Virus record (IMG/VR): IMGVR_UViG_3300022200_000019
Coordinates: 124,001-188,000 of that record
Strand: one strand, 5' to 3'
Length of the DNA stretch: 64,000 nt
Made by a program: the position numbers and the translations under genes. Under the pieces are notes generated by a model. It was not told where the DNA came from. It saw only the letters and a list, made by a program, of their open reading frames with translations, and did no database searches. Positions 8,376 through 63,770 of this stretch are shown one piece after another (positions within the stretch are counted from its first letter, which is position 1; each line of letters begins with the position of its first letter).

Positions 8376-8617
8376 ACCCTTATATAGAATACTCAGACAA
8401 GTTTGATCGGTTTGCTGCTGAGAAATTTCCTCATCAGCTTGATGTTGCGCTTGAATTAGGTTTACTTGATGAGTGTATGGAATGGTGCCGCAATAATCTA
8501 GAATACGAGTACCGCATTAACCAAACTTCGTTTAGCCTTAAAGATTGTCAATATCATTTTTACTTTGAAGATTCACAAGACGCCGTAGCATTTACATTAA
8601 GATGGGGCAAGAAATAA
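8372..8617 (+). CDS. Hypothetical protein
   Basis: 81 aa; ends FEDSQDAVAFTLRW, a motif recalled from jumbo-phage proteins. Confidence 0.65.
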   Translation: MNPYIEYSDKFDRFAAEKFPHQLDVALELGLLDECMEWCRNNLEYEYRINQTSFSLKDCQYHFYFEDSQDAVAFTLRWGKK

Positions 8618-8624
8618 ATAAAGC

Positions 8625-8993
8625 ATGAGCTGTAACAATGGAAAGGCATGCTCCACCAAATGGTGTGGGTGGCTACAGAGCCTAGCACAAATCGCTGTAG
8701 CTGGAGTTATCGTTTACGCTGGATTCATCGTAAATCAACACATGGAATCGTGGACTCGTGCTTTTGATCAGGGCAGCAAAGATTTACACAATATCAGTCG
8801 AGCAATGACCGAAATTGAAACTGACATGCGTATTATTAAAGTACAAATGGACGGTATGAATATCAATACTGCTGGATTAAATCAAAACTTTGCGCACTTA
8901 AATCGTCAGATGGATGCGATGAATTATCAAGTTGGCAGCATTCGTAATCGTTTCTCTCCAATGGGCATGATGCGTGGAATGATGCCATGGTAG
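8625..8993 (+). CDS. Single-TM coiled-coil protein
   Basis: TM helix then Met-rich heptads ending MGMMRGMMPW; TAAATA 4 nt upstream. Confidence 0.75.
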   Translation: MSCNNGKACSTKWCGWLQSLAQIAVAGVIVYAGFIVNQHMESWTRAFDQGSKDLHNISRAMTEIETDMRIIKVQMDGMNINTAGLNQNFAHLNRQMDAMNYQVGSIRNRFSPMGMMRGMMPW

Positions 8994-9163
8994 TATGTAA
9001 ATGTAGGGATATTAGAGAAGAAGATTACCCTACAGAAGCAGAACTAAAAGAACGCATCATGAAACCCGATTTTAATTGTGGGCAATGTCAGATGCGTTAT
9101 TTGATGGTTGACGAACAACCTAACACCCAGTATAATACAAAAACTCAGAGTACAGCCACTTAA
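8987..9163 (+). CDS. Bfd-like [2Fe-2S] ferredoxin (58 aa)
   Basis: MVVCKCRDIREEDYPTEAELKERIMKPDFNCGQC...: CxC...CGxC; below track length cutoff. Confidence 0.6.
   Translation: MVVCKCRDIREEDYPTEAELKERIMKPDFNCGQCQMRYLMVDEQPNTQYNTKTQSTAT
9108..9136 (+). promoter_or_regulatory. Sigma70-type promoter for ncRNA/tRNA transcript
   Basis: TTGACG-17 bp-TATAAT. Confidence 0.8.
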
Positions 9164-9272
9164 TACATATATGCGGACACTATGTCGACTACTGCTTCCG
9201 CGGGTCAGGTTACGGTTCGAAACGTTTACCGTTGTACTTTAAGTGTCCTGGGCATGACAATAATCTGCCCAT
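9145..9272 (+). ncRNA. Candidate structured (pseudoknotted) ncRNA upstream of tRNA-Trp
   Basis: Pairings 9147-56/9231-40, 9175-81/9242-48, 9249-54/9266-71; family not identified. Confidence 0.45.
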
Positions 9273-9280
9273 ATTATTTT

Positions 9281-9354
9281 GTAGGGATGGTATAATGGCA
9301 TTACGCTGGTCTCCAAAACCAGAGATTGAGGTTCGATCCCTTGTCCCTGCGCCA
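9281..9354 (+). tRNA. tRNA-Trp (CCA)
   Basis: Acceptor GTAGGGA/TCCCTGC, anticodon arm CTGGT-CTCCAAA-ACCAG, T-loop TTCGATC, encoded 3' CCA. Confidence 0.95.
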
Positions 9355-9391
9355 TTATTACTTAAATATAGTAAACAACGAGGTGACCAAA

Positions 9392-9496
9392 ATGAATATG
9401 GTTTGTGCTGTTTTGGACAGCGTAATTTTAGTACTTACTGTAATCACAATGTTTGCTGTTTTAAGAGGGTGGAAAAATGAAAAAGAAGCGCACTAA
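9392..9496 (+). CDS. 34-aa membrane peptide
   Basis: SD GAGGTG, TAAATA at 9363; MNMVCAVLDSVILVLTVITMFAVLRGW... Confidence 0.45.
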   Translation: MNMVCAVLDSVILVLTVITMFAVLRGWKNEKEAH

Positions 9497-9599
9497 AAAT
9501 CCAGTTGCTCGGTTTATGAATGATTTCAACAAGCCTGCAACACACCGAGACCGAACAAAATACTCGCGCAAAGCAAAACACACAAAACCTCTGTTGTAA
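9477..9599 (+). CDS. 40-aa basic protein, possibly ArfA-like
   Basis: MKKKRTKNPVARFMNDFNKPATHRDRTKYSRKAKHTKPLL; not in track. Confidence 0.55.
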   Translation: MKKKRTKNPVARFMNDFNKPATHRDRTKYSRKAKHTKPLL

Positions 9600-13429: not shown

Positions 13430-13442
13430 CTAAATAACCTGC

Positions 13443-13688
13443 ATGTTCTATAACGATCAACTTGAAACCATTATCCACGAATCAATTATTCGTGTTATGG
13501 GTGTACTATACGAAAGTCGTATTGTAGAAGGTGCCAACATGGGTGCCATGATGCGATTGTTTAATGTTGGTGAGGAAGTATGTTCTAAATATGACGACAT
13601 GCTCGTTGCATTTGACAATGACTTTTTTAATGATTACGAAAGTATCACTGGTATTGATCTGCGAGTAGCAGACCAAACGGTACACTAA
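13443..13688 (+). CDS. Hypothetical protein
   Basis: TAAATA 6 nt upstream. Confidence 0.7.
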   Translation: MFYNDQLETIIHESIIRVMGVLYESRIVEGANMGAMMRLFNVGEEVCSKYDDMLVAFDNDFFNDYESITGIDLRVADQTVH

Positions 13689-15990: not shown

Positions 15991-16209
15991 ATGGCAAAAG
16001 ACGATAACATTACATTAACAGGTACAGTAGTAGAAGTACTACCAGGCGCAACAGTTCGCGTTCGCTTACATGAAGCACAAAAAGAAATTATTGGTTATAT
16101 CAGCGGACGTATGCGCAAGAATAACATCAAAGTTTTAATGGGCGATGATGTAGAAATTGAAGTTAGCCCATACGATTTATCTAAAGGACGTATCACACGT
16201 CGTAAATAA
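15991..16209 (+). CDS. infA: Translation initiation factor IF-1
   Basis: MAKDDNITLTGTVVEVLPG...ISGRMRKNNIKVLMGDDVEIEVSPYDLSKGRITRR. Confidence 0.95.
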   Translation: MAKDDNITLTGTVVEVLPGATVRVRLHEAQKEIIGYISGRMRKNNIKVLMGDDVEIEVSPYDLSKGRITRRK

Positions 16210-22902: not shown

Positions 22903-23129
22903 TGCTTCAACCACAAACCAAACACGGCGTTGAGGCAATGGAGTCCATTCGCATGCTTGTGTTAGAAATGCATTCGGGATTTAATGACGGATTTATTGCA
23001 AGTCACTATAAACGCGATTTGTTTATTATCAAACATCTATTAGAACAAATCTACAACAACGCTCCTACCTTTTCAAACGAAGAAGAATGGGAGCATGAAC
23101 TTTTACTTGACAAACTCTCCGAAAAATAG
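22902..23129 (+). CDS. Hypothetical protein
   Basis: TAATG overlap. Confidence 0.7.
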   Translation: MLQPQTKHGVEAMESIRMLVLEMHSGFNDGFIASHYKRDLFIIKHLLEQIYNNAPTFSNEEEWEHELLLDKLSEK

Positions 23130-23141
23130 TATTATACGACT

Positions 23142-24056
23142 ATGAAAGAACTATGGACTGAAAAGTGGCGTCCTCGCACAGTCAAGGACTATGTGTTTCG
23201 TGACGAAGCGCAGCGTAAACAAGTACAGGGTTGGATAGATTCTGGTGCTATTCCACACTTACTATTCTCAGGTGCTCCTGGTGTAGGTAAAACTACACTA
23301 GCAAAAATACTCATTAATGAACTTGACGTTAACGAATATGATGTGCTTGAAATCAACGCAAGTCGTGAAAACTCTGTTGATACTATCCGAGAAAAAATTA
23401 CTGGATTCGTAGCCACAATGCCATTTGGTGCATTTAAAGTGGTGCTATTAGATGAAGCTGATTATATTTCTCCAAATGGTCAGGCTGCGCTGCGCGGCGT
23501 AATGGAAACATATCATGCAAGTGCCAGATTTATTCTTACCTGTAACTATCCAAATCGTATTATCCCTGCTCTACATTCTAGATGCCAAGGATTCCATATC
23601 GAGCGTGTGGATATTGTTGAGTTTACTGCTCGTATGGCTAACATACTTCTTAGTGAAGGGGTTAATTTTGAGCTAGATACGCTGGATACATACGTTAAAG
23701 CAACATATCCGGATTTGAGAAAGTGTTTGAATATGTGTCAAATGAATGTAACCGATGGACACTTAATCAAGCCAAACGGTGATGAAGGTGGTTCGCAGGA
23801 TTACAAACTACAAGTAGTAGACTTGTTTAAAGCAGGCAAGATTAAAGAAGCTCGCAATATGCTTACTTCAAGTGTGCGTCCAGAAGATATGGAAGAACTG
23901 TATCGGTGGATGTATGACAACTTGGAGTTGTGGGGCGACACAGACGAAAAGAAGGATAAAGCTATCCTTACTATCCGCACCGGACTTGTTAATCATAGTT
24001 TTGTAGCGGATCCGGAGATTAATCTCTCAGCAACATTAGTAGAGTTAACATCATGA
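23142..24056 (+). CDS. Clamp-loader AAA+ subunit (T4 gp44/RFC small subunit-like)
   Basis: WTEKWRP, GAPGVGKTT, LLDEAD, LHSRC. Confidence 0.95.
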   Translation: MKELWTEKWRPRTVKDYVFRDEAQRKQVQGWIDSGAIPHLLFSGAPGVGKTTLAKILINELDVNEYDVLEINASRENSVDTIREKITGFVATMPFGAFKVVLLDEADYISPNGQAALRGVMETYHASARFILTCNYPNRIIPALHSRCQGFHIERVDIVEFTARMANILLSEGVNFELDTLDTYVKATYPDLRKCLNMCQMNVTDGHLIKPNGDEGGSQDYKLQVVDLFKAGKIKEARNMLTSSVRPEDMEELYRWMYDNLELWGDTDEKKDKAILTIRTGLVNHSFVADPEINLSATLVELTS

Positions 24057-25486: not shown

Positions 25487-26468
25487 GGCATATATAGGGT
25501 TTGCCTGACATTATATCAGGTAAATCCCACGACTTCTGCAATGTTGTAAACCATTCAACACATTCGCTTAGAGGATATTCCAGTGCATTGTTATTTTTAA
25601 TCATTGGTTTAATTTGCGAGTTGCCAGGTTGGTGCATAGTTTCCGGGTAAAATCCCGTAAAACAACATGGATATATAGAACCGTCGGCTGCTAGATAAAT
25701 TTCTTGGTTTTGCATAGATATACAGTTTAATCTCGACGATTCGTCTATGTCTATTGACATTTTTATCGATGGATCAAACCAAGATAAATGATTGTTCAAT
25801 AAATCAGTAACTTTAGGTATGCCGCCAGGCCATCCATTAGTTCCTATCCAATATTCAAACTCTCCTTTTCTAGAATACACAGGGGTTTGGTTTCTTCCTT
25901 GGTCCCACAGTGTGAAATCTGTAAACCCAAGATCTTTTGCTAATGCCTTGCATTCGTTGATCTGATGTTTGTTATGCATAAATGGTATAAATTTCCAAAC
26001 AGCATTTCCGTTATTGTTAATAACAGATTTCGCGTTAGCAATAACTTTATTCCAATTCGTGTCTATTCTATAGGTGCTATGGGTATCTTCTAACCCATCC
26101 AATGCAAATAATATAGTGATGCGTCTATTTGCTAATTGTGCCCACCATTCTGGAGTATTAGCACTACCGTTAGTTTCGATTTGTATTTGCGAAGTGCTGT
26201 TAGTTAGAAAGTAATCAACTATTTTTAGCGCATCCTTGGCGTTAGAAAAGTCGCCAAGGTTACCATTAAAGTTAACATGCCTGATTTGCTTTAAAAAATC
26301 AATAGAAAATATTTTCTGTATATCTTCTAATAAAAGTTCTGTTATCGGGTACCCAGAATTATAAGAATATCCGCGATAATTTCTCATGCACATTGGGCAC
26401 CTAGCATTGCATCTAGTGGTTAACTCAATGTGCAGAGAACGTATACTGTTGATATCTAGCATCAACAT
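25464..26468 (-). CDS. Radical SAM protein with SPASM/Twitch domain
   Basis: CNARCPMC, FNGNLGD, IETNGS, ADGSIYPCC, C-terminal CxxxC; probable true start ATG 26462. Confidence 0.9.
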   Translation of the reverse strand: MLMLDINSIRSLHIELTTRCNARCPMCMRNYRGYSYNSGYPITELLLEDIQKIFSIDFLKQIRHVNFNGNLGDFSNAKDALKIVDYFLTNSTSQIQIETNGSANTPEWWAQLANRRITILFALDGLEDTHSTYRIDTNWNKVIANAKSVINNNGNAVWKFIPFMHNKHQINECKALAKDLGFTDFTLWDQGRNQTPVYSRKGEFEYWIGTNGWPGGIPKVTDLLNNHLSWFDPSIKMSIDIDESSRLNCISMQNQEIYLAADGSIYPCCFTGFYPETMHQPGNSQIKPMIKNNNALEYPLSECVEWFTTLQKSWDLPDIMSGKPYICLNTCRSR

Positions 26469-26477
26469 ATTTACATA

Positions 26478-27188: not shown

Positions 27189-27348
27189 ATATCTCCTTCC
27201 TGACTTAATTTTATTTAAGGCCGCAATCAGATCAATATTACAGCTCAGTTATTGAAAATATTTTCGAGCTAAATAAATTTTTTGCACCCCTGAAAAACTT
27301 AAAATCACAAAATATATTCCCAGTCCTGTATCGCGCATACATAGTGTT

Positions 27349-27948
27349 ATGAACTTACCCAAACGTTTATTCTTTACAGGCGTACCAGGTTCTCGGTGGA
27401 GCGGCATTGCGCAGGTGCTAGAAGCACTACCAGGATTTAATACCACAGATCGCACACCAGAACGAACATACGAACACCATGCATACACAGGGCATGTGGG
27501 TGCATATTTTGGGCGTGGCATGGAATTCCCAGCTGAGCTGGATTTAGATACAATTGATAGTGCATGGACCGATCCAGCAGCTGGTACACAGATTGTTAAA
27601 AGTCATGACTGGGCGTATAAACTCAATGAAATACGAGCTGTTGCTAAAGAAAACGGAGATTGGATAATGCTTGTTTACCGTCCCGATTTAGCGAGTCAAG
27701 CATGGTGGCACGAGGCCGGTGGATTCCAAATTAAATATCCAAACTACGGTGTATACCGAGACCATGCAGGAATGCTTGCAGAGATTGTAGCACAAAACAA
27801 GGCTATACTAAAATTTGGCCGGGACGTTCTTGCTCGTTGGGATTATTTTGATGCGTCTTGGATTGCTGCAAAGTTTGGCATTCCGATTAATGATATTCCA
27901 GACATAACACCCTGGGATGACATACTCGTATCGGTGATAAAAATATGA
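27349..27948 (+). CDS. Hypothetical protein with P-loop-like N-terminus
   Basis: FFTGVPGSRWSG, VKSH; sulfotransferase-like fold is a guess. Confidence 0.65.
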   Translation: MNLPKRLFFTGVPGSRWSGIAQVLEALPGFNTTDRTPERTYEHHAYTGHVGAYFGRGMEFPAELDLDTIDSAWTDPAAGTQIVKSHDWAYKLNEIRAVAKENGDWIMLVYRPDLASQAWWHEAGGFQIKYPNYGVYRDHAGMLAEIVAQNKAILKFGRDVLARWDYFDASWIAAKFGIPINDIPDITPWDDILVSVIKI

Positions 27949-35607: not shown

Positions 35608-35632
35608 AAAGCAGCCTTCGGGCTGCTTTTTT
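35608..35632 (+). terminator. Rho-independent terminator
   Basis: AAAGCAGCC-TTCG-GGCTGCTTT followed by a T run. Confidence 0.9.
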
Positions 35633-35644
35633 ATTGGTAAACCT

Positions 35645-35688
35645 TGTAACAAAAATTTAACAAAAGTGTAATAAAACGGTAACGGTTT
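35645..35688 (+). promoter_or_regulatory. Pho-box-like array (4 x 11-bp direct repeats) upstream of pstS
   Basis: TGTAACAAAAA/TTTAACAAAAG/TGTAATAAAAC/GGTAACGGTTT in exact 11-bp register. Confidence 0.7.
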
Positions 35689-35729
35689 TATGTTTAAATA
35701 ATGTTGATAAAACAAGGAGAAAAGAAGCA

Positions 35730-36686
35730 ATGAAAAGACTAATTGCGTTTTTTGCCGCACTGGCAATTAGCACAAGTGCTTTCGCAGGGGCGAAAGTAGA
35801 CACACAGTTACCAAACTATCATAAAGTTTCAGGTGTTAGTGGTAATTTAAACTCGGTGGGCTCAGATACATTAGCAAATTTAATGACTATGTGGGCTGAG
35901 GAATTTCGTAAAATATATCCTAATGTTAACATTGGTATTCAAGCAGCGGGATCAAGCACTGCCCCGCCAGCACTAACTGAAGGAACTTCAAATGTTGGTC
36001 CAATGAGTCGTAAGATGAAGGATAAAGAACTACAAGCATTTGAGGCAAAGTATGGATATAAACCAACTGCTATTCCTGTTGCTATTGATGCGTTAGCAGT
36101 ATTTGTTAACAAGGACAATCCTATTAAAGGATTAACGATTGCTGAAGTTGACGCAATCTTCTCAAGCACAAGAAAGTGCGGTGCTAAACAAGACGCAATT
36201 AAATGGGGCGATGTAGGGTTAACTGGCTCCTGGACAAATCGCACAATTCAATTGTATGGTCGTAATTCTGTATCTGGCACCTACGGCTACTTTAAGAAAA
36301 AAGCACTTTGTAAAGGGGATTACAAAAATGATGTAAATGAACAACCAGGTTCAGCATCTGTAGTACAAAGTGTCACAGGTAGTATAAATGGCATTGGTTA
36401 CTCAGGTATGGGTTACAAGACTTCTGGTGTAAAAACTGTTCCATTAAGCAAGAAAGGCGGTCCATACGTGGACGCAACACCTGAAAATGCATTAAATGGT
36501 TCATACCCACTGGCACGTTTTTTATACATTTATGTAAACAAGGCTCCTAATAAGCCGTTAGATCCAATGACATACGAATTTATTCGTATGGTTCTATCCA
36601 AGCAAGGACAAACAGTTGTAGTCAAAGATGGCTATGTTCCGTTACCTGCTGATATGGCTGAGAAATTATTGAAAACTGTTCAATGA
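35730..36686 (+). CDS. pstS: Phosphate ABC transporter substrate-binding protein
   Basis: Signal peptide; [48 protein letters not shown]. Confidence 0.95.
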
Positions 36687-36712
36687 TAACTATCTAGACT
36701 GCAACAAAAATT

Positions 36713-36738
36713 AAAGCAGCCTTCGGGCTGCTTTTTTT
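36713..36738 (+). terminator. Rho-independent terminator identical to the one at 35608
   Basis: AAAGCAGCCTTCGGGCTGCTTTTTTT; T-tract overlaps TATAAATA (36738-36745). Confidence 0.9.
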
Positions 36739-36750
36739 ATAAATAGTATT

Positions 36751-37311
36751 ATGGATAAAGATTTTTTCAAAGACGATAAGGCATATTGGCAGATTGCTGA
36801 TGAAGTTAAAGGCATTTATCTGAGTGATGGCTCAATGGCAAGTTTAATTGACTTTGAGCGTGTATTAGATGAAGTAGACATCTACGCTTTTGCTAACTGG
36901 GAAGATGGCGAACTTGTTAAAGGCCCAGACATCGGACGTTATAAAGTAACTTGTACTTTTATGTGGCCAGAGCGTATGATGCCTGATCCACGTGGTGCTA
37001 AACGTTTATTACCGTTTGACTGCGATGTATCGTTTTTGAAAACTGTTCTACAAGTTCCTGCTAAAGTTAAATCGTATGATGACTTTAAGCCCGGTACTAA
37101 AAAACCAAAAATGATTGACATGCCAGTATGGCTTGTTGAAATCACTATGCCAAAGGATCTAATGTCAGATATTCGCACTGGTTCAATTGAACTAGAAGGT
37201 CAGGATATTGATCTAGAAGATCTGGACGCAGCATACGAACAAGACTTAGATCAACAAGAAACTCAAGACATCGAAACACAAGAAGAAGCAGACGAAGCAT
37301 TTGCAGGTTAA
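36751..37311 (+). CDS. Conserved jumbo-phage hypothetical protein
   Basis: 186 aa; TATAAATA 5 nt upstream; acidic tail. Confidence 0.8.
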   Translation: MDKDFFKDDKAYWQIADEVKGIYLSDGSMASLIDFERVLDEVDIYAFANWEDGELVKGPDIGRYKVTCTFMWPERMMPDPRGAKRLLPFDCDVSFLKTVLQVPAKVKSYDDFKPGTKKPKMIDMPVWLVEITMPKDLMSDIRTGSIELEGQDIDLEDLDAAYEQDLDQQETQDIETQEEADEAFAG

Positions 37312-39077: not shown

Positions 39078-39828
39078 TCCGTACCATATATTAGGCGTTT
39101 CTCCAAACGCATCACCAGAACAGATTAAAAAGGCTTTCAAGCAGCTAGCCATGAAGCATCATCCTGATCGCGGCGGCGACGAAGCAGAGTTTAAAAAAAT
39201 CAACGAAGCATATGCTATACTAAGCGATCCTGAACGCAAGCAACAGCACGACAATCCTGGATTTAATTTCAGACACACCGCAGGTGGAAACTTTCATGAT
39301 GTGTTTGATGAATTTTTCAGACAGCAAAGACAACAGCGCACATCAACTGTTAGATTATCGTTGTATATTGATTTAAAAACCGCAGCCACAGGCGGGGAAA
39401 AACTCGTAAGTTTACAAACTACTAACGGCCCACAAGCAGTGGAAATCGAAATTCCCGAAGGTATTAACGATGGCGATACTGTGCGTTATCCTCAGTTACT
39501 CAGGCACAGCGACTTACAAGTTACATTTCGCATACATCCAGATAAAACATGGCAGCGTCAGGGGAACAATCTAACACGCGAGCTTGAACTGGATTTCTGG
39601 GATTTTATTCTAGGCAGCAAAGTTGAAGTGGAAACCATCTACGGCGATCGCATCGCGTTAACTGTGCCACCAAAATCACATCCAGGAACACTGATGCGGA
39701 TTAAAACCAAAGGCATGCGTGGCAAATATGCAGGCCAGACTGGAGATATGTTTGTAAAACTTACTGCTAAACTCCCAGAAGATTTGCCAGAAGAGCTAAT
39801 TGATACCCTAAAAAGGTTGCGCCAATAA
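39070..39828 (+). CDS. DnaJ-class II (CbpA-like) co-chaperone
   Basis: J-domain with HPD; DnaJ C-terminal domain; no Zn finger. Confidence 0.9.
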   Translation: MNNPYHILGVSPNASPEQIKKAFKQLAMKHHPDRGGDEAEFKKINEAYAILSDPERKQQHDNPGFNFRHTAGGNFHDVFDEFFRQQRQQRTSTVRLSLYIDLKTAATGGEKLVSLQTTNGPQAVEIEIPEGINDGDTVRYPQLLRHSDLQVTFRIHPDKTWQRQGNNLTRELELDFWDFILGSKVEVETIYGDRIALTVPPKSHPGTLMRIKTKGMRGKYAGQTGDMFVKLTAKLPEDLPEELIDTLKRLRQ

Positions 39829-39836
39829 ATATTTTT

Positions 39837-40190
39837 ATGTTAAAATTAGTCAAAACGCCAAAGAAAAAGAAGCCAACAGATTGTACATTTGAAAAGCCAG
39901 TTGACAATCAAAAAACAGCAGTTAAAATGTTAATGTGCTGTAACAGTAATAACAGAGAATATGTAATTGGCCCAGATGTAGGTTTAGATTTAAATGTATT
40001 GGTAACAAAAACAAAACCAAATTATTATTTCAATCCGGCTATAGTTGATAATGGTGTGCAATATCAAGATTACTTAGGTAACACAATGCACACAGATACA
40101 ATAACAGAAGCAATGCAAGAAGCATTAACAAGACTTGCAGGAACTAGAAGAACCAGGAAAAAAACGGATGCAAATCAATCCAGAAATTGA
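39837..40190 (+). CDS. Degenerate peptide deformylase-like protein
   Basis: VIGPDVGLDLNVLV...FNPAIV echoes PDF motif I; HExxH absent. Confidence 0.4.
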   Translation: MLKLVKTPKKKKPTDCTFEKPVDNQKTAVKMLMCCNSNNREYVIGPDVGLDLNVLVTKTKPNYYFNPAIVDNGVQYQDYLGNTMHTDTITEAMQEALTRLAGTRRTRKKTDANQSRN

Positions 40191-43721: not shown

Positions 43722-43748
43722 TACTGTGTTTTAAATAAATACAGTATC

Positions 43749-44732
43749 ATGAATTTAAAAGAACTAGATAGTTTTAAACTAGGCGATGCAGTTAACTTCC
43801 ACGAAGAACTAAATCCTGCTCTCTGGGAAAACGAAATGATGCGCTCAGACGTGCGCAAAGCACTGTTACGCATTGCCGCAGATTTCCAAGAGTTCTTAGG
43901 TGTTAAAGATCTAGCAGTAGAAGATGTTCGCGTTTCCGGGAGTAACGCAGCATATTCATATACGCCACATTCAGACATTGACTTACACTTGATTGTTGAC
44001 TTTGACCAAATCAACAACGATGAAGTGTATCAAGAGTTATTCAACGCAAAAAAGTTTCAATATAACCAAGAGCATAATATTAAAGTTCGTGGTTATGATG
44101 TAGAACTGTATGTTCAGGACGCAACCCAACCACACGCCAGTTTAGGTGAATATAGTGTAGCACGTGATGAGTGGACTCGCATTCCAACAAAGCAGCGTGC
44201 CAACCTAGACGATTTTGCAACACGTCAAAAATACGATAAACTCAAAGGCTTAGTTATGGCTGCGTTGGTTAGTAAAAAACTAAACATGGTAGATGACGTA
44301 ACAGATGTTGTTAAACGTTATCGTCGTGCTGGACTAGCAGAGGGTGGTGAGTTTAGCCCAGAAAATTTAGCATTCAAAATGTTACGTACTCAAGGTTATA
44401 TTGAAAGACTTTGGAAACATCGTAGTGAACTAGAAGATCGTGAACTTAGTTTAGAGCAAGCCGAATCTATTGTAGAAGCAGCAATACGCGAATTAGAATT
44501 ACATCAGGTATTAGCAGAAATGAAATTATCAGACTTTTTACCCAAAAAAACCCGAGAGCAAAATCAAGCAGATGAGCGTATGGCTATCGACGCAATGATG
44601 GTTTTAAGTACTTCAACTGAATACGCAATTGAAGATATTGTAAGGGCTGTAGAAGCGGCTTTAGAAACCGGAAAAGTTCACAATCGAAAAGATCTTTTAC
44701 AAATGGCGGCAGATATATTAGAAAAACAATGA
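43749..44732 (+). CDS. Pol-beta-superfamily nucleotidyltransferase
   Basis: SGSNAAYSYTPHSDIDLH, YDVELY. Confidence 0.8.
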   Translation: MNLKELDSFKLGDAVNFHEELNPALWENEMMRSDVRKALLRIAADFQEFLGVKDLAVEDVRVSGSNAAYSYTPHSDIDLHLIVDFDQINNDEVYQELFNAKKFQYNQEHNIKVRGYDVELYVQDATQPHASLGEYSVARDEWTRIPTKQRANLDDFATRQKYDKLKGLVMAALVSKKLNMVDDVTDVVKRYRRAGLAEGGEFSPENLAFKMLRTQGYIERLWKHRSELEDRELSLEQAESIVEAAIRELELHQVLAEMKLSDFLPKKTREQNQADERMAIDAMMVLSTSTEYAIEDIVRAVEAALETGKVHNRKDLLQMAADILEKQ

Positions 44733-50174: not shown

Positions 50175-50374
50175 AAGTATCAGAAATCATCAACGAAGGT
50201 GTAGGACGTATTACGCCGCAAAACCAAACACAGGATGTCGGTCCTGATCAAGTTTCTATTGAAGCAAAGAAATTAGGTTTTAAAGTAGATCGGGATGGTC
50301 GCCCACCACTTTTAAGTTCAAACGCAAAGAAAAACACAAATCCTAACACACTATTCAATCTTGGCATAAATTAA
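50171..50374 (+). CDS. Small CTS-leader protein
   Basis: MKVSEIINE-GVGRIT... Confidence 0.75.
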   Translation: MKVSEIINEGVGRITPQNQTQDVGPDQVSIEAKKLGFKVDRDGRPPLLSSNAKKNTNPNTLFNLGIN

Positions 50375-50377
50375 TAC

Positions 50378-51088
50378 ATGTCAGATGTGATATATTGCTC
50401 CGGAGATTCGTGGACCTACGGCGCCGGTCTTAATAATCTTAACGATTCGTTTTGTTATCAATTGTCTACATTAATAAATGTCGACTGCGTTAATCTAGGC
50501 GTTAATGGCGGTAGTAACAGCGGAATGTTTAACGAAGTATTTAATCGACTCGACAAAATAAACAATAGTAAATACGATCGTGGTTATATTATACTAACAT
50601 TTACCGAAAATGGAAGAGATATACGAGATTTTAAAAATCGCCCATTTGATTACATATCCGCATATAAAGATATGGTTCATAATTATAACTTTTACACCTG
50701 TGTATTGGATGATATTGAATATGAGTGGGAAGTCAAGCTATCTCAACTCAGAGAAAAAATAGATCCAAGGTTTCGTATCATAACAGGATGTAATTTTGCC
50801 AAGCCAAAAAATATAAAACTAGATATTCAAGAGCCATGGATTTCATTATTAGGTTATAATAAGTTAGTGCCAAGACTTACCTGCGTTGAAACAACTAATA
50901 CATTAAATGAAATATTAGGTATTGAATCTTCCGACGACCATAAACTGTGGTTAATTGACCATGGGCAACAACCAATTGATATATATAACTTTTTTGATCA
51001 GTGCTCGTATATGTTAGATCATGATCGAGGGCATCCTAATAAGGTCGGACATCAAATCTGGGCAGAGAGGATACTATGCGAGCTCTAA
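50378..51088 (+). CDS. SGNH/GDSL-like hydrolase
   Basis: SGDSWTYG, NLGVNGGSN, RGHPNKVGH. Confidence 0.8.
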   Translation: MSDVIYCSGDSWTYGAGLNNLNDSFCYQLSTLINVDCVNLGVNGGSNSGMFNEVFNRLDKINNSKYDRGYIILTFTENGRDIRDFKNRPFDYISAYKDMVHNYNFYTCVLDDIEYEWEVKLSQLREKIDPRFRIITGCNFAKPKNIKLDIQEPWISLLGYNKLVPRLTCVETTNTLNEILGIESSDDHKLWLIDHGQQPIDIYNFFDQCSYMLDHDRGHPNKVGHQIWAERILCEL

Positions 51089-51780: not shown

Positions 51781-52852
51781 AGGTGGGATGTTCGAACCGT
51801 TACGGTGGAGTGGGAGCATTCGGGACTTTCCTTATTTTAACGAGTATCCGTGGCTTGAACGTTATAAAACTAAAAACTATTATGTTGGTGCAAGTGCCGC
51901 TTGGGATTTTTTTCAAGATCTACCCATTGGGTTTGACGCATATATCTTTATCCATCATGTAGAGTTATGCGATCCTAAATGGCTCAAACAACAACAAAAA
52001 AGAGTCAATACGCCGTTTTATGTTCTGTTGTCGGGAAATGACTATAACATTAATATTCCAAATACTACTTTTATTCCATATACACATTGGCACTATGATT
52101 TACAAAAAATAGTTGACTGGTGGGGTATACAAAAAACACCCGACCATAAAAAATATAAATTTAGTGCAGTTAATAATAGAATTACACAAGCAAAAGTTTG
52201 GATTACCACTAAGTTATTAATTTCTAGTAGAAATGAATCATTAATAATTAATAATCCAAATTGGATTGAAAGTAAGAATATACATAACTGGGAGCATTGT
52301 GGAAATCCTATTCTAGACGAGTTGACCGATATTTTTTTACAAGAGTTCATCGACTTAGAACTCAAAGACGAGTTTGATAAGGATAAAAATTTTCAAAGGT
52401 ATAATTCTAATCCATGGCAGCCATTATATACAGACACCTCTATACATTTTACAAACGGTAGCCATCATTATAGTTTTATGATGGATGACTATTTTCCATA
52501 CACGTTTCCCGGACCGCATATTGATGAAAAAACATTTAAATGCTTAGTAGCAGGTACTGCATTTATACCAGTTGCGCAATTTGAAATTTATAAATCGTTG
52601 GAAAATTTTGGATTACAGTTTGATTATGGTTTTAACACTGAATGGGATAACGACCCTGGTAACTTGTCAAGATTTGAAAACATTATAAAATTAATTGATT
52701 TGCTAAATGATTACTCAAAAGAAGAACTGTACAGCAAAACAAAAGACATCTCAATTTATAATCAACAATACATATTTGATGGCAAATTCTATAAAAATTG
52801 CGAATTACACAATGAAGAATGCATTGAACAGTTGCATCAACTAATAGCATAA
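51758..52852 (+). CDS. Hypothetical, possibly glycosyltransferase-like protein
   Basis: IDEKTFKCLVAGTAFIP resembles GT10/exostosin-type C-terminal motif; AT-rich. Confidence 0.55.
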   Translation: MGMLLQNKGGMFEPLRWSGSIRDFPYFNEYPWLERYKTKNYYVGASAAWDFFQDLPIGFDAYIFIHHVELCDPKWLKQQQKRVNTPFYVLLSGNDYNINIPNTTFIPYTHWHYDLQKIVDWWGIQKTPDHKKYKFSAVNNRITQAKVWITTKLLISSRNESLIINNPNWIESKNIHNWEHCGNPILDELTDIFLQEFIDLELKDEFDKDKNFQRYNSNPWQPLYTDTSIHFTNGSHHYSFMMDDYFPYTFPGPHIDEKTFKCLVAGTAFIPVAQFEIYKSLENFGLQFDYGFNTEWDNDPGNLSRFENIIKLIDLLNDYSKEELYSKTKDISIYNQQYIFDGKFYKNCELHNEECIEQLHQLIA

Positions 52853-52862
52853 ATACGTCTAT

Positions 52863-55091
52863 ATGAACTTAAATGACATCCTCAACGAAAAAATTAAGAA
52901 AGTACATGGTAAGTGGGCCCTGGTAAGCAAAAGCGATCCGGATAAAGTCTTACAATATTATCATGGCAAAGACCATCCTAGCAAAGAATGGGAAAAGAAA
53001 GTTGAGCGTCGTGTTCATGCATTCTCAGAAGCAGAAAGTTTAGACAAAACCATTGATAGAATGCGTAACTTAGATATCGATGATATCGAACACCTGAAGC
53101 GTTATTCAAACCCACAATTAAAAGATTGGTTAAAACGCTTAACAGCAGCAAATAAAAACAATATTGGTTCAGCACTTAATACATTAGACACTATGGGTCC
53201 TATTGCTAAACCATTTGCTAAGTCATTTGTACAAAAGCAATTTCCAGGCATCGACGATACAGAGTTTGACCAAGCCTGGAAGTTCTGGCAAGAAACTGAT
53301 CCAGCAACTCGTTCAGCAGTTACTAAAGGTGACTTGACTACGCTTGATCCAAGAGACGAACATGGCTTTGTTAAAGAAGCCAATAATGACATAGTAGCGA
53401 ACAGTATCAATGAATACAATACCGACGGCATTGATCCAGGAAACGATGAACTATTTGTGCCTATGGGTCTGCTCAACCGTTTTGAAGATAATGGGTGGTA
53501 TGCATTTGACGGCGGTCGAGATCAAGCGGTGTTAGCCAAACGCAACATACCTTATGTGCTGAAAATTGTAGGTCAAGGATCGCACAACAGAATTGACGCA
53601 GTTCGCCAGTATGTTGATTTCTTTCGTCGCAATCAACATAATCCACATTTTCCCAAAGTGGGTAGTGATAAAACACTAACCTGGGAAGGCAAAAAATACT
53701 ATGCTTACGCTCAAGAAAAACTTATAGATTTACCGGGTGATGCGGTGATGGATTATCTCGAAGATACTATGCAATCATTTGGTCACAGCGGAAAACAGCC
53801 TAACTTTGACAAAATACCCCAGGGGCTGTCAGCAAAGCAAGTTAAAGGTTTAATGAATGCTATTAGTGAGTTGCTTGCATCGGGCATAGGCAATAATCGT
53901 GCGTTTGATTTGGGTAATGTCCTGAATATTATGAAACGAAAAAATGGACAGCTAGTGATTGTTGATCCATTTAGTTCTCACGATCGTTTAGATCCTAGCG
54001 AAGAATACGTGAGCGAAACAGATGATTATGATGCTTGGTTAGAAAAAGCCAAAAAACGTGCAGAAAAGCAAGCAGCAAAAAAACGTGCTGAATTACAGCA
54101 AGTAATGAAGGGCATCGAAACCGATCCAGAAAAACTAGCATTACAAGGTACAATTCAAGCGGCACGCGGTGAGCTTAGTAAGCGTAAGCGTGAAGCATTG
54201 GCTAAGATGGAGCAAATGAAACAAATTTACTCTGAGTTTTCTGATGAAGAATTAGATAAAATTATCGGGCGTTATTCAAAAGGTCCAGGTGCTGGTTCAG
54301 ATTTTGTGGAATGGTTAAAGTCCATTAAACAAGAACGCGAAGACGAGCGGTCTGGTGTTCAACAACGACAGGATGTATTTAGAAGCGTGGCAGGACCCAT
54401 GCAAGGCAAACAAAGCCAAAAGGCTGCACCTGCACAAGGTAAACCATGGACACAGTTAGGTATGACTCGTGATGAATTTAGAAAAATTCTAAACAACCCA
54501 CAACATCCTCGTCATAGAGAAATTAAACAATTACACGATCAGTATAAACAAGTCGACGAAGATTTAACTCGCAGAGATTTCTTAAAAGGTGTCGCAGGCG
54601 GGGCAATGGCGCTAGGGGCTATGAAAGCTGCTAAAGCATTAGGATTAAAAGATCCTACCAGATCCACAGACACTGATGATCAGTACCAGAGATTCACAGG
54701 CGCAAAACCTGCACCATTGTATGCTAAACCAGACCTGGATCCAGAACGTAAATGGAACCGTGTGGGTGTCAATCAACCAGGCGGTCAGTTCAGCATTGTG
54801 CTACACAAAGACTTTGATTTATATTTGTATTTTGTAACACGTGATTTTTCCACATCGCCCTATGCCTACATAGAATTACAGGATGGTGAAAAATATAAAT
54901 TCCGCATTCGTACTCTGAAAAACGATACATTTACCATCGAAGATCCCAGAATGGCAGCAACACTATTGAATTATCAAGGTAAATTCAATCTGTATGTTGG
55001 CGATGACGTGTACACATTTAACATCATGCCCAGTCAGGAATCCAAAGTATTATATCGCTGGTGGAAAGAAGGCACACATCAGGGATTGTGA
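52863..55091 (+). CDS. CTS-leader modular protein: kinase-like domain + internal Tat-signal module
   Basis: MNLNDILNE; GGRDQAV...VLK...FDLGNVLNIM...IVDP; VDE-DL-TRRDFLK. Confidence 0.75.
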   Translation: MNLNDILNEKIKKVHGKWALVSKSDPDKVLQYYHGKDHPSKEWEKKVERRVHAFSEAESLDKTIDRMRNLDIDDIEHLKRYSNPQLKDWLKRLTAANKNNIGSALNTLDTMGPIAKPFAKSFVQKQFPGIDDTEFDQAWKFWQETDPATRSAVTKGDLTTLDPRDEHGFVKEANNDIVANSINEYNTDGIDPGNDELFVPMGLLNRFEDNGWYAFDGGRDQAVLAKRNIPYVLKIVGQGSHNRIDAVRQYVDFFRRNQHNPHFPKVGSDKTLTWEGKKYYAYAQEKLIDLPGDAVMDYLEDTMQSFGHSGKQPNFDKIPQGLSAKQVKGLMNAISELLASGIGNNRAFDLGNVLNIMKRKNGQLVIVDPFSSHDRLDPSEEYVSETDDYDAWLEKAKKRAEKQAAKKRAELQQVMKGIETDPEKLALQGTIQAARGELSKRKREALAKMEQMKQIYSEFSDEELDKIIGRYSKGPGAGSDFVEWLKSIKQEREDERSGVQQRQDVFRSVAGPMQGKQSQKAAPAQGKPWTQLGMTRDEFRKILNNPQHPRHREIKQLHDQYKQVDEDLTRRDFLKGVAGGAMALGAMKAAKALGLKDPTRSTDTDDQYQRFTGAKPAPLYAKPDLDPERKWNRVGVNQPGGQFSIVLHKDFDLYLYFVTRDFSTSPYAYIELQDGEKYKFRIRTLKNDTFTIEDPRMAATLLNYQGKFNLYVGDDVYTFNIMPSQESKVLYRWWKEGTHQGL

Positions 55092-56194: not shown

Positions 56195-56221
56195 CCATTA
56201 ATTTTGTTGCATAAATACAAC

Positions 56222-56491
56222 ATGCGTGCCACAGAATTTTTAACAGAATCTTATCCAACAGTAACAATGAATTACCAGCAGTTTCTCGTTGAAGAACCTG
56301 TAAAAAGTTCATGGATTGAAGATTTATCTTATGTTGAATTCAAAGACGGATCTGGTGGTGTAAACATGACCACAAAGGGTGGCCGCACTTATTTTATCGA
56401 AGACGTACCATACGAAGTCTACGAACGCTGGTTAAAAGCTCTTAGCAAAGGCAAATTCTGGTGGTCAGACATCAAATACTTCTATACTTAA
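56222..56491 (+). CDS. KTSC-domain protein with CTS-like leader
   Basis: MRATEFLTE; VKSSWIEDLSY...GRTY...VP..VY..W..A.SKGKF...IK..Y. Confidence 0.8.
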   Translation: MRATEFLTESYPTVTMNYQQFLVEEPVKSSWIEDLSYVEFKDGSGGVNMTTKGGRTYFIEDVPYEVYERWLKALSKGKFWWSDIKYFYT

Positions 56492-56509
56492 TACCCGCAT
56501 AAATAGTAG

Positions 56510-57835
56510 ATGCGAGCAAGAGATTTCATTCTACTAGAATACAAGCACGACGTTACGATGAGAAACTATGGTGAAAAGTTTCGCGATCGCATGCTTGGCG
56601 ATATGACCATTACTGCTAGTACTCAGAGTAAACTAGAAGATGCTAAAGCTAAAGGCATAGGTCCGTCCAGTGATACGTTCACTCCAGGCTATCTAAGAAG
56701 AATCGAACAATCAGATCCAACTCCAAATCGAGAATACACACAGTGGATGGTGCGTAGTTATATTAACCGTGTTGTTAATTATTACGAAGACGTATTATCT
56801 ACACTTGCGGGCTTTGCTGGTATGTTTAACGAGCTTAAAATACATCGTCGTTTACCAGAAAAATATCGCGACATTAATCAAATCAAAACTCGAGAAATCT
56901 TTCGTGATGCTTATCGAGCAGTTGCTGATCGATATGAAGAATTCCGCGACGAACAGCAAGAACAGAAACCACTAAGCAAAGGCCACGCACAAGAAGTCTA
57001 CAACGGACCAGAAGTGAGAATCATCCATCCTGTAGACCAAGCGGCTGCTTGTTACTATGGGCAAGGTACACAGTGGTGTACTGCTAGTACACGCAGCCAA
57101 AATTACTTTAATGATTACAACAACGAAGGTCCGTTATTAATACTAATTCCCAAGAAGCCAGCGCATGAAGGCGAGAAATATCAATTACATGCTGCTAGCG
57201 AACAAGTTATGGACGAGCATGACAGTTCTGTTCCAATGGGTCACGTAGTAAGTAGATTCCCCAATACCAATCTTGGAGAGATTCTAATTAAATTTGATCC
57301 TGAATGGAAAGACTTTGCAGAACTAATGCATCCAGATGATCTTAAACGAATTGTTCGTTTGTATAACCAAAGACTTGTAAACTTTAACAAATGGATCTTG
57401 GATCAATACACCCAAAACAGCTCAATGTCAAAACAGCAACAACAAGAACTAAAAGCTGCTGCGGAACGTGCTGGTTGGCCAAACGCTGGTACATTCACAT
57501 ACGATCAGTTTGCTGAATATCTACGTACTGGATCTATCCATTCTAAGGAACGTTTTATAAGAACACTAGTTGATCTATCTTATGATTTATTAATCCCGCA
57601 TTTAAGAAGCAATGACGCTCTTGAGCAGTTTGACAAGACTCCTAGAGATGTTTTAAATACTCAAGGAATGGTAGGATTAAGCAAAAGAAACTTTGTTCAA
57701 ACATGGACAGTATTATTAAATGACTGGAGAATTCGGTTTAGTGATGAAGATCCAGATTGGGCAACATATGTTGGGCCTACTAACAACAGCATGTATAATA
57801 ACGCAGTAGGGTATACCGATTGGAGTAGCCGATGA
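56510..57835 (+). CDS. CTS-leader paralogue 1 (DPTPN / YYGxGTxWCTA family)
   Basis: MRARDFILLE; shared core with three downstream genes. Confidence 0.85.
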   Translation: MRARDFILLEYKHDVTMRNYGEKFRDRMLGDMTITASTQSKLEDAKAKGIGPSSDTFTPGYLRRIEQSDPTPNREYTQWMVRSYINRVVNYYEDVLSTLAGFAGMFNELKIHRRLPEKYRDINQIKTREIFRDAYRAVADRYEEFRDEQQEQKPLSKGHAQEVYNGPEVRIIHPVDQAAACYYGQGTQWCTASTRSQNYFNDYNNEGPLLILIPKKPAHEGEKYQLHAASEQVMDEHDSSVPMGHVVSRFPNTNLGEILIKFDPEWKDFAELMHPDDLKRIVRLYNQRLVNFNKWILDQYTQNSSMSKQQQQELKAAAERAGWPNAGTFTYDQFAEYLRTGSIHSKERFIRTLVDLSYDLLIPHLRSNDALEQFDKTPRDVLNTQGMVGLSKRNFVQTWTVLLNDWRIRFSDEDPDWATYVGPTNNSMYNNAVGYTDWSSR

Positions 57836-59166: not shown

Positions 59167-59168
59167 AT

Positions 59169-61885: not shown

Positions 61886-61915
61886 ACTAAATACTATATC
61901 AAAGAGAAAAATATC

Positions 61916-62494
61916 ATGAACTTATCCGAAGAACTCAGAAAATATGCCAATATCTTAAATGAAGAACGCACAGACGAATACTTTGATTATGGCGACGATG
62001 CCGATACCAGCAATGAACCAGCAGGTATGCCGTTTTATAAACTGCCTGCAAAAAGTTCAGCAGTAAAAATCACAAATAAAGCGCACCAAGCCGGACTAAA
62101 CACAGTTGAGTTTCAAGGACAATATCTGAGTGTTTCGCCTAACCAAGCCGATCGGCTGGAAGAACTAATGCGTGCCATGCGCATGCAGTTTACGCCGGTA
62201 ACGGGTGTTCCTGATTGGGGTGCAGATGATTCACATCTAAGTCGCAAAGAACGTGCTCGTGGCATGCCATATAAATTTAGCGAAAACAAATCGGTAATTC
62301 GTAAAAGATTTCCCAAATTAGAAAAAGCAATTATTCAAGATCAAGATCCAGAGTTGGCATCTCTGTATGCCATAAAGGTAATCGGAGGCAGATGGCCCGA
62401 AGCAGAACCAGTGATTGCCAAAGATTCAGAGTCGGCATCTCTGTATGCCCGATATATACTCAAAGGTCCTTGGCCCGAAGCAGGGATCAAATGA
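61916..62494 (+). CDS. Candidate head protein with 26-aa C-terminal repeat
   Basis: MNLSEELRKYANILNE; ASLYA..(V/I)..G(R/P)WPEA x2. Confidence 0.75.
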   Translation: MNLSEELRKYANILNEERTDEYFDYGDDADTSNEPAGMPFYKLPAKSSAVKITNKAHQAGLNTVEFQGQYLSVSPNQADRLEELMRAMRMQFTPVTGVPDWGADDSHLSRKERARGMPYKFSENKSVIRKRFPKLEKAIIQDQDPELASLYAIKVIGGRWPEAEPVIAKDSESASLYARYILKGPWPEAGIK

Positions 62495-62904
62495 GAGCAA
62501 GAGAATTCACATCTGAAGCAGATATGACACGTAGAGATTTTCTCAAACGTGCAGCAGCAACACTGGCAGCACCAGCAGTAGCAAAGGCTGGTCCTCCGGT
62601 TAGTGACGAAACTACCCAAGCAGTTGATCTAGCACAAGATCCAAACTGGATGCCACTATACAAAGACGGCGAACCAGTTACTGCTCCTCCATATGCTCAA
62701 GAGTTATATGGCAAGGGTTATCCAAAAGATACAGATTATCGTCCCGTTGATCCAATTGATTCGTTTGAAAAAGACCCAGACGTTCAGAGATTCTATGATC
62801 TCAAAGCAAAACGTTGTTTGGCAAACCGTGGCACACCAGTAAAGGATGCGCAAGGTAACATAGATTGTACGCAAGTACGTGGTAAAGCATCGCAAACATG
62901 GTAG
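62491..62904 (+). CDS. CTS-leader protein with Tat signal
   Basis: ATG 62491; MRAREFTSE-ADM-TRRDFLK-RAAATLAAPAVAKA. Confidence 0.8.
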   Translation: MRAREFTSEADMTRRDFLKRAAATLAAPAVAKAGPPVSDETTQAVDLAQDPNWMPLYKDGEPVTAPPYAQELYGKGYPKDTDYRPVDPIDSFEKDPDVQRFYDLKAKRCLANRGTPVKDAQGNIDCTQVRGKASQTW

Positions 62905-62910
62905 AGGTTG

Positions 62911-63150
62911 ATGGGAAAGATATTAAAATTTCCAACTGAAAAAACTTTTACTTGTATGCTGCCAGACGACTGGGCAGACCCAGAAAACCCTACGCAATAC
63001 GAAATCGCTAACACAATGCGCACATTACGTCAGATGATGACAGAGTGCGAAAAAGAATATCACAAAACACAATCCCCTGCGTTAACTGTACAAATCAATA
63101 AAATTAAATCCTGTATACAGTTAATGTACAGTTATTATCGCTCAGACTAA
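62911..63150 (+). CDS. Hypothetical protein
   Basis: SD GAGG; MGKILKFP. Confidence 0.65.
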   Translation: MGKILKFPTEKTFTCMLPDDWADPENPTQYEIANTMRTLRQMMTECEKEYHKTQSPALTVQINKIKSCIQLMYSYYRSD

Positions 63151-63190
63151 CCTGTATAAATATTTTTAACATGTAGCACAGGAGTCTACC

Positions 63191-63430
63191 GTGAGCGATG
63201 ATATCTTTGACGACATTGAACTCACAGGCATTGAACGCTTTAATAGCCACTTGAACGAGGATATCAAAGACCGTGCCTATCGCTATGTTACACATAGTCC
63301 AGAGTACCACAGAGTACCTCTTAGCGAACTCAGAAGAATACGCAGCAAAGCAAAAAAACTAAAAAGAAGCTATAAAAAACAACAACGCAAGCAATCTCAA
63401 GACATTTCCAAACGCTACGGCGGTCGTTGA
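63191..63430 (+). CDS. Basic hypothetical protein
   Basis: TATAAATA 63155, SD AGGAG, GTG start. Confidence 0.7.
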   Translation: MSDDIFDDIELTGIERFNSHLNEDIKDRAYRYVTHSPEYHRVPLSELRRIRSKAKKLKRSYKKQQRKQSQDISKRYGGR

Positions 63431-63449
63431 TTACTAGCATAAATACTGT

Positions 63450-63770
63450 ATGAAAGATACAGTATTCGTAAAACTCTGTGTGGATTTACACTGTGACTGG
63501 CAGGGGTTGCCACCAGATTACCGTATCTATGTGGACAATGAATTGTTTGCTGAACGCACTTATCGTTGGGAAAAACCTGTATACCTGACAGAAATTCTTC
63601 AGATTAATGCAGTGCCTGACACAGAATATCTGGTCACACTGGACGATTTTGCACCACAGATTGCAAATTTCAAGATGTCAAACCACAGAGTTGAATATTG
63701 TGACTTGCCTGTGGAATTTAACAAGTGTAAAGACAAAAAATTTAGGTTTAAAGTTAAAAATGAAAGTTAA
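63450..63770 (+). CDS. Hypothetical beta-rich protein
   Basis: TAAATA 4 nt upstream; YRIYVDNELFAERTY. Confidence 0.75.
   Translation: MKDTVFVKLCVDLHCDWQGLPPDYRIYVDNELFAERTYRWEKPVYLTEILQINAVPDTEYLVTLDDFAPQIANFKMSNHRVEYCDLPVEFNKCKDKKFRFKVKNES

Follow-up and report, generated by a model that had tools for sequence, protein, structure and literature searches.

Leaderless expression from promoters whose −10 region lies next to the open reading frame (ORF) is documented in Thermus phages, in Deinococcus-Thermus, in Actinobacteria, and for the cI gene of phage lambda. In the Thermus phages phiYS40 and Lalka27a the −10 element abuts the initiator codon, and most or many transcripts have the A or G of that codon as their first base (bioRxiv 10.64898/2026.04.20.719267). 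Recognition of a 5'-terminal AUG without a Shine-Dalgarno (SD) sequence is described for leaderless mRNAs of Actinobacteria and mycobacteriophages (PMC4633059) and for the lambda cI mRNA made from PRM. Here we describe a comparable layout for T4-type late promoter boxes (TAAATA) in a 64,000-nucleotide (nt) stretch of viral DNA, referred to as the window, which comprises bases 124001–188000 of a single 212,917-bp IMG/VR viral contig (IMGVR_UViG_3300022200_000019, here G000) with a guanine-plus-cytosine (GC) content of 39% and a completeness of ∼61% (CheckV). Many genes of this phage and its clade are probably expressed as leaderless mRNAs, or with a leader of 1–2 nt, from promoters that abut their start codons.

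The −10 region adjoins the ORF and no SD is present in Deinococcus-Thermus (PMC12340547), as in this phage. The Thermus cases have mapped 5' ends and belong to a host phylum known for leaderless mRNAs, whereas the start sites of this phage are predicted from its sequence. The late −10 element of Lalka27a is TAGGGT, as against the T4-type TAAATA found here together with strong AAGGAG SDs that are used elsewhere in the phage, and lambda cI is a single leaderless gene compared with ∼10% of the genes (113 of 1161, both promoter classes together) and two promoter classes in the present clade. T4 late promoters share the TAAATA core and are likewise −10-only with nothing conserved upstream, their leadered spacing of 20–30 nt is that of the SD-bearing boxes of this phage, and T4 carries gp55 beside gp47/gp46 in the same manner as two relatives described below. 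The T at −13 of the T4 late box is not conserved in this phage.

The Rak2-like jumbo phages CBB and GAP32, of the same supergroup, have ATAAATA late motifs predicted upstream of structural genes and a gp55-like sigma factor, and CBB has no detectable gp33 or gp45; placement of the motifs against start codons is not described in that report (PMC5259590). Predicted ATAAATA late motifs and gp55-like sigmas are on record for cultured relatives (PMC5259590, PMC6102473). The nearest cultured relatives tested here lack the abutting layout, and the literature searched describes it neither for T4-type late promoters nor for jumbo phages of the Rak2/Atu_ph07 supergroup.

TAAATA Boxes Abut Start Codons

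Genes were called with a simple and crude codon-usage model, and the gap was taken as the number of nucleotides between the last base of the motif and the start codon, with boxes at gaps of 4–7 nt termed proximal and those at leader distance termed distal. When all 4096 hexamers were ranked at 3–8 nt before the first ATGs of called ORFs, TAAATA came out on top, above the SD hexamers. The motif occurs 197 times in the contig (both strands) and is proximal in 21 cases, with counts of 0, 0, 0, 0, 5, 8, 4, 4, 0, 1, 0, and 1 at gaps of 0–11 nt. The spacing is bimodal, consisting of a peak at 4–7 nt with a mode of 5, a nearly empty interval at 8–14 nt, and a second, broad hump at ∼15–35 nt, which spans ∼19–33 nt in the histogram of this contig and where the boxes are accompanied by an SD. 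In 2000 shuffles of the 30-nt stretch preceding each gene, the whole contig gave 2.04 ± 1.4 proximal boxes (maximum 8) as compared with the 21 observed, and the window gave 0.69 (maximum 4) as compared with 9.

A first-pass annotation of the window had listed ten exact TAAATA sites lying 4–7 nt before a start codon without an SD, and had proposed a genome-wide spacing histogram and a comparison with shuffled AT-rich intergenic sequence as tests of the idea. All ten sites are present at the coordinates listed, each precedes the ATG of a real ORF, and none has an SD (Table 1); the five distal sites given as having one (9363, 16503, 21968, 63157, and 27217 on the minus strand) do have it. The whole-contig histogram has the clear 4–7-nt peak, which is far stronger than in shuffled sequence. 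Two variant sites, with TACATA at 27338 and TAAATT at 50367, found no support as members of the class: these hexamers occur at gaps of 4–7 nt only 2 and 3 times, respectively, in six pooled genomes, about the uniform expectation, and the one ortholog found for these sites is without TAAATA.

Over the whole window TAAATA is rarer than expected, with 54 sites as compared with 81.6 ± 8.8 in dinucleotide-preserving shuffles (100 of 100 shuffles with at least 54). Selection against stray promoters would lead to such a depletion.

The Proximal Peak Is Specific to One Clade

Few of the contig proteins have matches in PHROGs. The best matches to the family-B DNA polymerase come from Sinorhizobium phage Phosso and Agrobacterium phage Atu_ph07 (∼49% identity), with Rak2/CBB/PBECO4-like jumbo phages next. 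The phage is a member of a clade of uncultured, aquatic T4-superfamily jumbo phages that has Atu_ph07 and Phosso as relatives. Five related contigs, spanning 37–48% GC, were used for comparison: three retrieved through the virion protein gene at 36751 (G001, 170 kb, 47.5% GC; G002, 104 kb; G003, 83 kb) and two through a gp55-like gene (G031, 233 kb; G032, 160 kb examined). The controls, run through the same caller, were T4, Atu_ph07 (complete genome), and Phosso (400 kb).

The 4–7-nt peak, the nearly empty 8–14-nt interval, and the distal hump were seen in all five related contigs. Of the 263 TAAATA boxes located no more than 60 nt from a start in the six pooled clade genomes (1161 genes), 76 have gaps of 4–7 nt (binomial p = 1e-28), with 8, 41, 12, and 15 at gaps of 4, 5, 6, and 7 nt and the mode again at 5. 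The controls, in contrast, have essentially no boxes at this distance from an ATG (2 of 209) and only a leadered hump at 20–34 nt. The proximal peak is specific to the clade, and because the controls lack it under the same caller, it is not an artefact of the caller, and T4-type late promoters do not share it in general.

The position of the box is maintained while its surroundings change. Orthologs of gene 36751 were found on 16 IMG/VR contigs at 57–72% amino acid identity, and 15 of the 16 loci have TAAATA followed by 5 or 7 nt and ATG, although the intergenic flanks and even the first protein residues diverge; at the sixteenth the box lies 25 nt upstream. Ortholog pairs between G000 and G001–G003 that align from residue 1 retain the proximal box, including a 430-residue protein in three genomes and gene 43749, which has a 7-nt gap both here and in G001. 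In a few orthologs the proximal box is exchanged for a leadered box or a plain SD. At the level of sequence the layout is robust and clade-specific.

For a genome of 39% GC with tightly packed genes and a motif that includes TAA, one might suspect coincidence within spacers rich in AT, or a side effect of the TAA stop codons of closely packed genes. This explanation is left with practically no weight by the excess over shuffled sequence, by the pooled p value, and by the modal 5-nt gap, which is out of frame with the TAA; moreover, T4 (35% GC), Atu_ph07 (37% GC), and Phosso (49% GC) are without the peak, so that the controls already refute chance. An artefact of stop codons was also rejected on its own account, as the modal gap is out of frame and the other TAANNN hexamers are flat: neither these nor the one-mismatch variants of TAAATA are enriched at gaps of 4–7 nt in the six pooled genomes. 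The TAA of the motif is the stop codon of the upstream gene in only 7 of the 21 proximal sites. An origin of the class from a repeat or mobile cassette was rejected as well, since the flanks are not conserved; the identical hairpins around the PstS-like gene described below are a local exception.

Promoter Geometry and a Parallel Sigma70-type Class

The T4 late box TATAAATA spans −13 to −6 (PMC1524935). As the T4 box ends at −6, a 5-nt gap, the mode observed here, would put +1 on the A of the ATG. The box in this phage is of the −10-only kind, with nothing conserved from −12 to −3, the TAAATA core itself having been fixed by the search; the base preceding TAAATA is A in ∼50% of the boxes of either class, proximal or distal, and the full TATAAATA is found at 36738 and 63155.

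A search for sigma70-type promoters (TTGAC(A/C/T)-N17-TATAAT) revealed the same arrangement. In the clade, 37 of 166 such promoters lie at gaps of 5–8 nt (10, 21, 3, and 3, respectively; mode 6; p = 5e-11) as compared with 2 of 138 in the outgroup. A mode of 6 is expected because the −10 hexamer occupies −12 to −7, a 1-nt offset from the TAAATA class, and the TAAATA class follows the sigma70 geometry with this expected offset. Since a −35/−10 pair cannot be a translation signal, the abutting layout is established for the sigma70-type class. One member lies in the window before the gp44-like clamp-loader gene at 23142, which is predicted to be leaderless from a promoter that is not late.

These promoters also bear on the possibility that the proximal TAAATA is no promoter, but a translation signal on a leadered polycistronic mRNA, such as an AU-rich, unstructured, or S1-binding site or a site of reinitiation. 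The overlap with upstream stop codons, and the fact that most sites lie 8–21 nt from the end of the upstream gene, would suit such a signal. However, a translation signal cannot account for parallel −35/−10 promoters 6 nt from start codons, and the 5- and 6-nt modes agree with promoter geometry; the identical hexamer is reused 15–35 nt upstream together with an SD, other AU-rich and TAA-starting hexamers are not enriched, and some proximal sites lie straight after terminators or in divergent regions. Thus a terminator at 36713–36734 immediately upstream of the box leaves no room for another promoter of gene 36751, a box at contig position 49726 likewise follows straight after a strong terminator, and a promoter must exist at 56212, which lies in a divergent region with no other plus-strand candidate seen. 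Taken together, these data make a translation signal distinctly improbable as the explanation of the class.

Start Codons and Shine-Dalgarno Sequences

The anti-SD pairing energy upstream of proximal starts has a median of +0.7 kcal/mol genome-wide, and none of the 21 reaches −5 kcal/mol; the same is true of the proximal sigma70-type sites (0 of 6). In the distal class (15–40 nt) the median is −5.6 kcal/mol and 63% reach −5, as compared with 10% of random genome windows. The start codon that follows a proximal TAAATA was ATG in 81 cases and GTG or TTG in none, although both were allowed and ATG makes up 81% of starts overall; proximal sigma70-type promoters are followed by 34 ATG, 2 GTG, and 1 TTG. 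Exclusive use of ATG would fit recognition of a 5'-terminal AUG, and this strictness can be likened to the leaderless starts of lambda and Actinobacteria.

Were the start codons wrong, with the real starts located downstream behind their own SDs, the boxes would be ordinary leadered promoters. The maximum-score start of the caller did differ from the first ATG at a few genes (for example, 8625 versus 8742 and 26462 versus 26387). Against this, ortholog alignments begin with residue 1 at the ATG next to the motif, the ATG moves with the motif rather than with protein length in the 16 loci examined, only ATG follows the proximal box, and the same caller yields no such peak in T4, Atu_ph07, or Phosso. 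Misplaced starts are consequently a very remote explanation, even more so than a translation signal.

In the mechanism that we favor, a −10-only late box of the T4 gp55 type, (N)NTAAATA, lies 5 nt (range 4–7) before the ATG, and other genes are served by a sigma70-type −35/−10 promoter 6 nt (range 5–8) before the start codon, in both cases without an SD. At these distances RNA polymerase would initiate at the first base of the start codon, and the ribosome would read the 5'-terminal AUG directly. The same late box also serves SD-bearing genes from 15–35 nt upstream. The nearly empty 8–14-nt zone fits a promoter model in which such leaders, which could not accommodate an SD and would not be leaderless either, are avoided. 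Many proximal boxes lie at the ends of upstream genes, and on read-through RNA their AUGs would be internal and without an SD, so that the layout may limit translation to transcripts begun at that promoter. T4 achieves the same result by masking the ribosome-binding sites of early read-through transcripts.

If this mechanism is correct, gene callers built around an SD will assign wrong starts throughout this abundant clade of aquatic phages, and the layout would point to hosts whose ribosomes handle 5'-AUG mRNAs. The clade would further provide a natural system for asking whether promoter choice gates translation and whether phage bS21 or IF-1 shifts initiation preference, and the sharp, clade-specific gain of the layout (absent from T4, Atu_ph07, and Phosso) would constitute a natural experiment.

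Presumed Late Timing and a gp55-like Sigma Factor

The boxes had been read in the first-pass annotation as late promoters placed to make leaderless mRNAs. The T4-type −10 behavior, the predicted start-site distance, the lack of an SD, the restriction to ATG, and the conserved position all lend this reading partial support; specificity to late expression was not sustained, because sigma70-type promoters show the layout too. Distal boxes with a strong SD precede tail-sheath and tail-fibre genes, and TAAATA also precedes virion-protein, PstS-like, radical-SAM, HNH-endonuclease, and bS21 genes.

Several observations weigh against late, leaderless expression from the proximal boxes. An A at +4, a signature of leaderless genes, is not enriched (43% versus 48%). 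Gaps of 6–7 nt imply leaders of 1–2 nt or flexible start-site choice, and with one-third of the proximal boxes overlapping an upstream stop codon, termination-reinitiation could also account for the absent SD. Many TAAATA genes in the window are auxiliary (PstS-like, radical SAM) rather than structural, and late timing was assumed; it was, like the start sites and the mode of translation, deduced from DNA sequence, with gene calls that are crude, if shared by the controls. Furthermore, no gp55 or gp45 homolog was found in the 61%-complete contig with phrog_234, phrog_12791, and phrog_223; tblastn with gp55, gp46, gp47, and gp45 of T4 and Atu_ph07 revealed none in the contig, where only a gp44-like clamp loader was found; and gp55, gp45, gp46, and gp47 were absent both from a 10-kb extension of the contig (G019) and from 30 clade contigs found via the DNA polymerase or a structural gene (∼1.5 Mb). 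Nor was gp33 encountered, although no search was aimed at it. The PHROG model used does detect gp55 of T4, Atu_ph07, and Phosso.

An alignment of the gp55-like proteins of Atu_ph07 and Phosso recovered >500 relatives in IMG/VR, among them those of G031 and G032. The DNA polymerases of these two contigs are 59 and 56% identical, respectively, to that of this phage, with which they have 62 and 46 proteins in common. Both contain a gp55-like/gp47/gp46 block (tblastn) arranged as in T4, and both proximal peaks are present. Proximal sites were found in only 12 of 79 gp55-bearing loci, and by our reading these 12 fall among the 15 loci that also share a small conserved protein with G002/G003. We infer that the gp55-like gene of this phage lies in the missing 39% of its genome.

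IF-1 and bS21 Homologs

The first-pass annotation had suggested a link between leaderless initiation and an IF-1 encoded by the phage. The IF-1 homolog is real (Table 1) and is also present in G001–G003. The link itself is weak, as Phosso has an IF-1 (56% identical) and a gp55-like sigma, yet no proximal peak, and genes with sigma70-type promoters also use the layout. A bS21 gene, passed over in that annotation, is located outside the window at contig positions 98969–99202 (PF01165, E = 6e-17). Homologs are present in G001, G002, G003, and G031, whereas Atu_ph07, T4, and the 400 kb of Phosso examined yielded none. Five clade genomes thus have the gene, and in three of them it is preceded by TAAATA: the box abuts the ATG in G000 (6 nt before it, proximal class) and is leadered in G002 and G003. 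bS21 supports the anti-SD, and leaderless mRNA passes or leaves the ribosome more readily when bS21 is lost (PMC10491246); a role of phage bS21 in biasing late translation has been proposed for other freshwater phages (PMC9723584).

It is conceivable, on these grounds, that leaderless translation depends on phage-made IF-1 and/or bS21 that retune the host ribosomes. We regard such a dependence as unlikely in view of Phosso, and also because the sigma70-type genes, if early, precede any phage factor, so that host ribosomes should already read such mRNAs; this capacity of the host would form part of the mechanism set out above. In addition, IF-1 and bS21 are commonly encoded by phages whose hosts do not use SDs. 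The bS21 connection is a lead only, since the co-occurrence is confined to a single clade and amounts to one evolutionary event. A broader proposal, a private translation channel in which 5'-AUG mRNAs would be translated only when begun at their abutting promoters (and be silent on read-through RNA) while phage-made bS21 and IF-1 would, late in infection, shift host ribosomes from SD-led host mRNAs to the leaderless mRNAs of the phage, is similarly doubtful.

Features of the Window and Related Observations

Coordinates of the individual features are given in Table 1; unless contig positions are stated, all positions refer to the window.

Table 1. Promoter boxes, hairpins, and the IF-1 gene in the window (aa, amino acids)
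Feature	Position	Strand	Gap or leader	Gene or start codon	Remark
Proximal TAAATA	8615..8627	+	4-nt gap	ATG of ORF 8625-8993 (122 aa)	TAA is stop of ORF 8372-8617
Proximal TAAATA	13431..13445	+	6-nt gap	ATG of ORF 13443-13688 (81 aa)	no SD
Proximal TAAATA	26460..26473	-	5-nt gap	ATG 26462 of radical-SAM protein gene 25464-26462	
Proximal box, full TATAAATA	36738..36753	+	5-nt gap	ATG of virion structural protein gene 36751-37311	TAAATA at 36740
Proximal TAAATA	39826..39839	+	5-nt gap	ATG of ORF 39837-40190 (117 aa)	TAA is upstream stop
Proximal TAAATA	43736..43751	+	7-nt gap	ATG of ORF 43749-44732 (327 aa)	
Proximal TAAATA	52850..52865	+	7-nt gap	ATG of ORF 52863-55091 (742 aa)	TAA is upstream stop
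Proximal TAAATA	56212..56224	+	4-nt gap	ATG of ORF 56222-56491 (89 aa)	92-nt divergent intergenic region
Proximal TAAATA	56500..56512	+	4-nt gap	ATG of ORF 56510-57835 (441 aa)	first of four tandem paralogs
Proximal TAAATA	63440..63452	+	4-nt gap	ATG of ORF 63450-63770 (106 aa)	
Variant TACATA	27338..27351	+	5-nt gap	ATG 27349	unsupported as class
Variant TAAATT	50367..50380	+	5-nt gap	ATG 50378	unsupported as class
Sigma70-type promoter TTGACA-N17-TATTAT	23107..23144	+	ends 6 nt before ATG	gp44-like clamp-loader gene 23142-24056	no SD
Distal TAAATA	35695..35732	+	29-nt leader	ATG of PstS-like gene 35730-36686	leader with AAGGAG
Distal TAAATA	16203/16207			start codon 16244	
Distal TAAATA	16503			start codon 16531	
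Distal TAAATA	19261			start codon 19299	
Distal TAAATA	21968			start codon 21998	
Distal TAAATA	27217	-		start codon 27188	
Distal TAAATA	33059			start codon 33105	
Distal TAAATA	61888			start codon 61916	
Distal TAAATA	63157			start codon 63191	
Terminator hairpin	35608..35629	+			identical to copy at 36713-36734; TAAATA box next after each copy
Terminator hairpin	36713..36734	+			directly 5' of the 36738 TATAAATA box, T-run extending into box
IF-1 homolog	15991..16209	+		72 aa	PF01176, E = 4e-20

The PstS-like phosphate-binding gene (PF12849), flanked by the two identical hairpins, resembles a self-contained terminator-promoter-gene-terminator cassette (35608–36734). Other auxiliary genes unusual in a phage are those for a TctA tricarboxylate-transporter permease (29977–31434), the radical-SAM enzyme, and a 772-residue ClpA/B-like ATPase (40135–42453). 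The nearest clusters of the TctA gene are from Pseudomonadota, a weak hint of the host; those of bS21 are viral and carry no host information.

At least 576 related stretches are present in IMG/VR, and 22 runs, listed as DNA (a guessed type) and derived from freshwater, estuary, and marine metagenomes, contain the sequence. No RNA run was listed, and the assembled contigs of four of the 22 runs revealed strain variants but no ends of transcripts. A megablast search of the phage collection with one gene gave no match. Contig G019 is identical over the last 26.6 kb of the contig and runs on for 10,035 bases past its 3' end, so that the genome can be extended from public data. A strain-level indel was observed at 39841–40160: three of four metagenome runs (X2, X3, and X7) gave contigs that lack most of the small gene behind the 39826 box; 27–31 unrelated bases are found instead in X2 and X7, and the TAAATA box and ATG are retained.

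Outside the window, an HNH endonuclease gene (contig positions 43795–44337, minus strand) lies antisense in the tail/virion region with its own TAAATA 5 nt before the ATG, an arrangement consistent with a mobile gene that brought its own putative leaderless late promoter. The tandem paralogs at 56510–61885 (∼440–477 residues) all match phrog_28193 and phrog_17056, of unknown function, and have an abutting box on the first copy only. Similar N termini were noted in three proximal-class proteins, MRATEF (56222, 89 residues), MRARDF (56510, 441 residues), and MRATEL (contig position 207418, 94 residues). Finally, a tRNA-Trp gene at 9281–9354 is followed 9 nt on by a TAAATA box, a GAGGTG SD, and an uncalled 34-codon ORF at 9392–9496.

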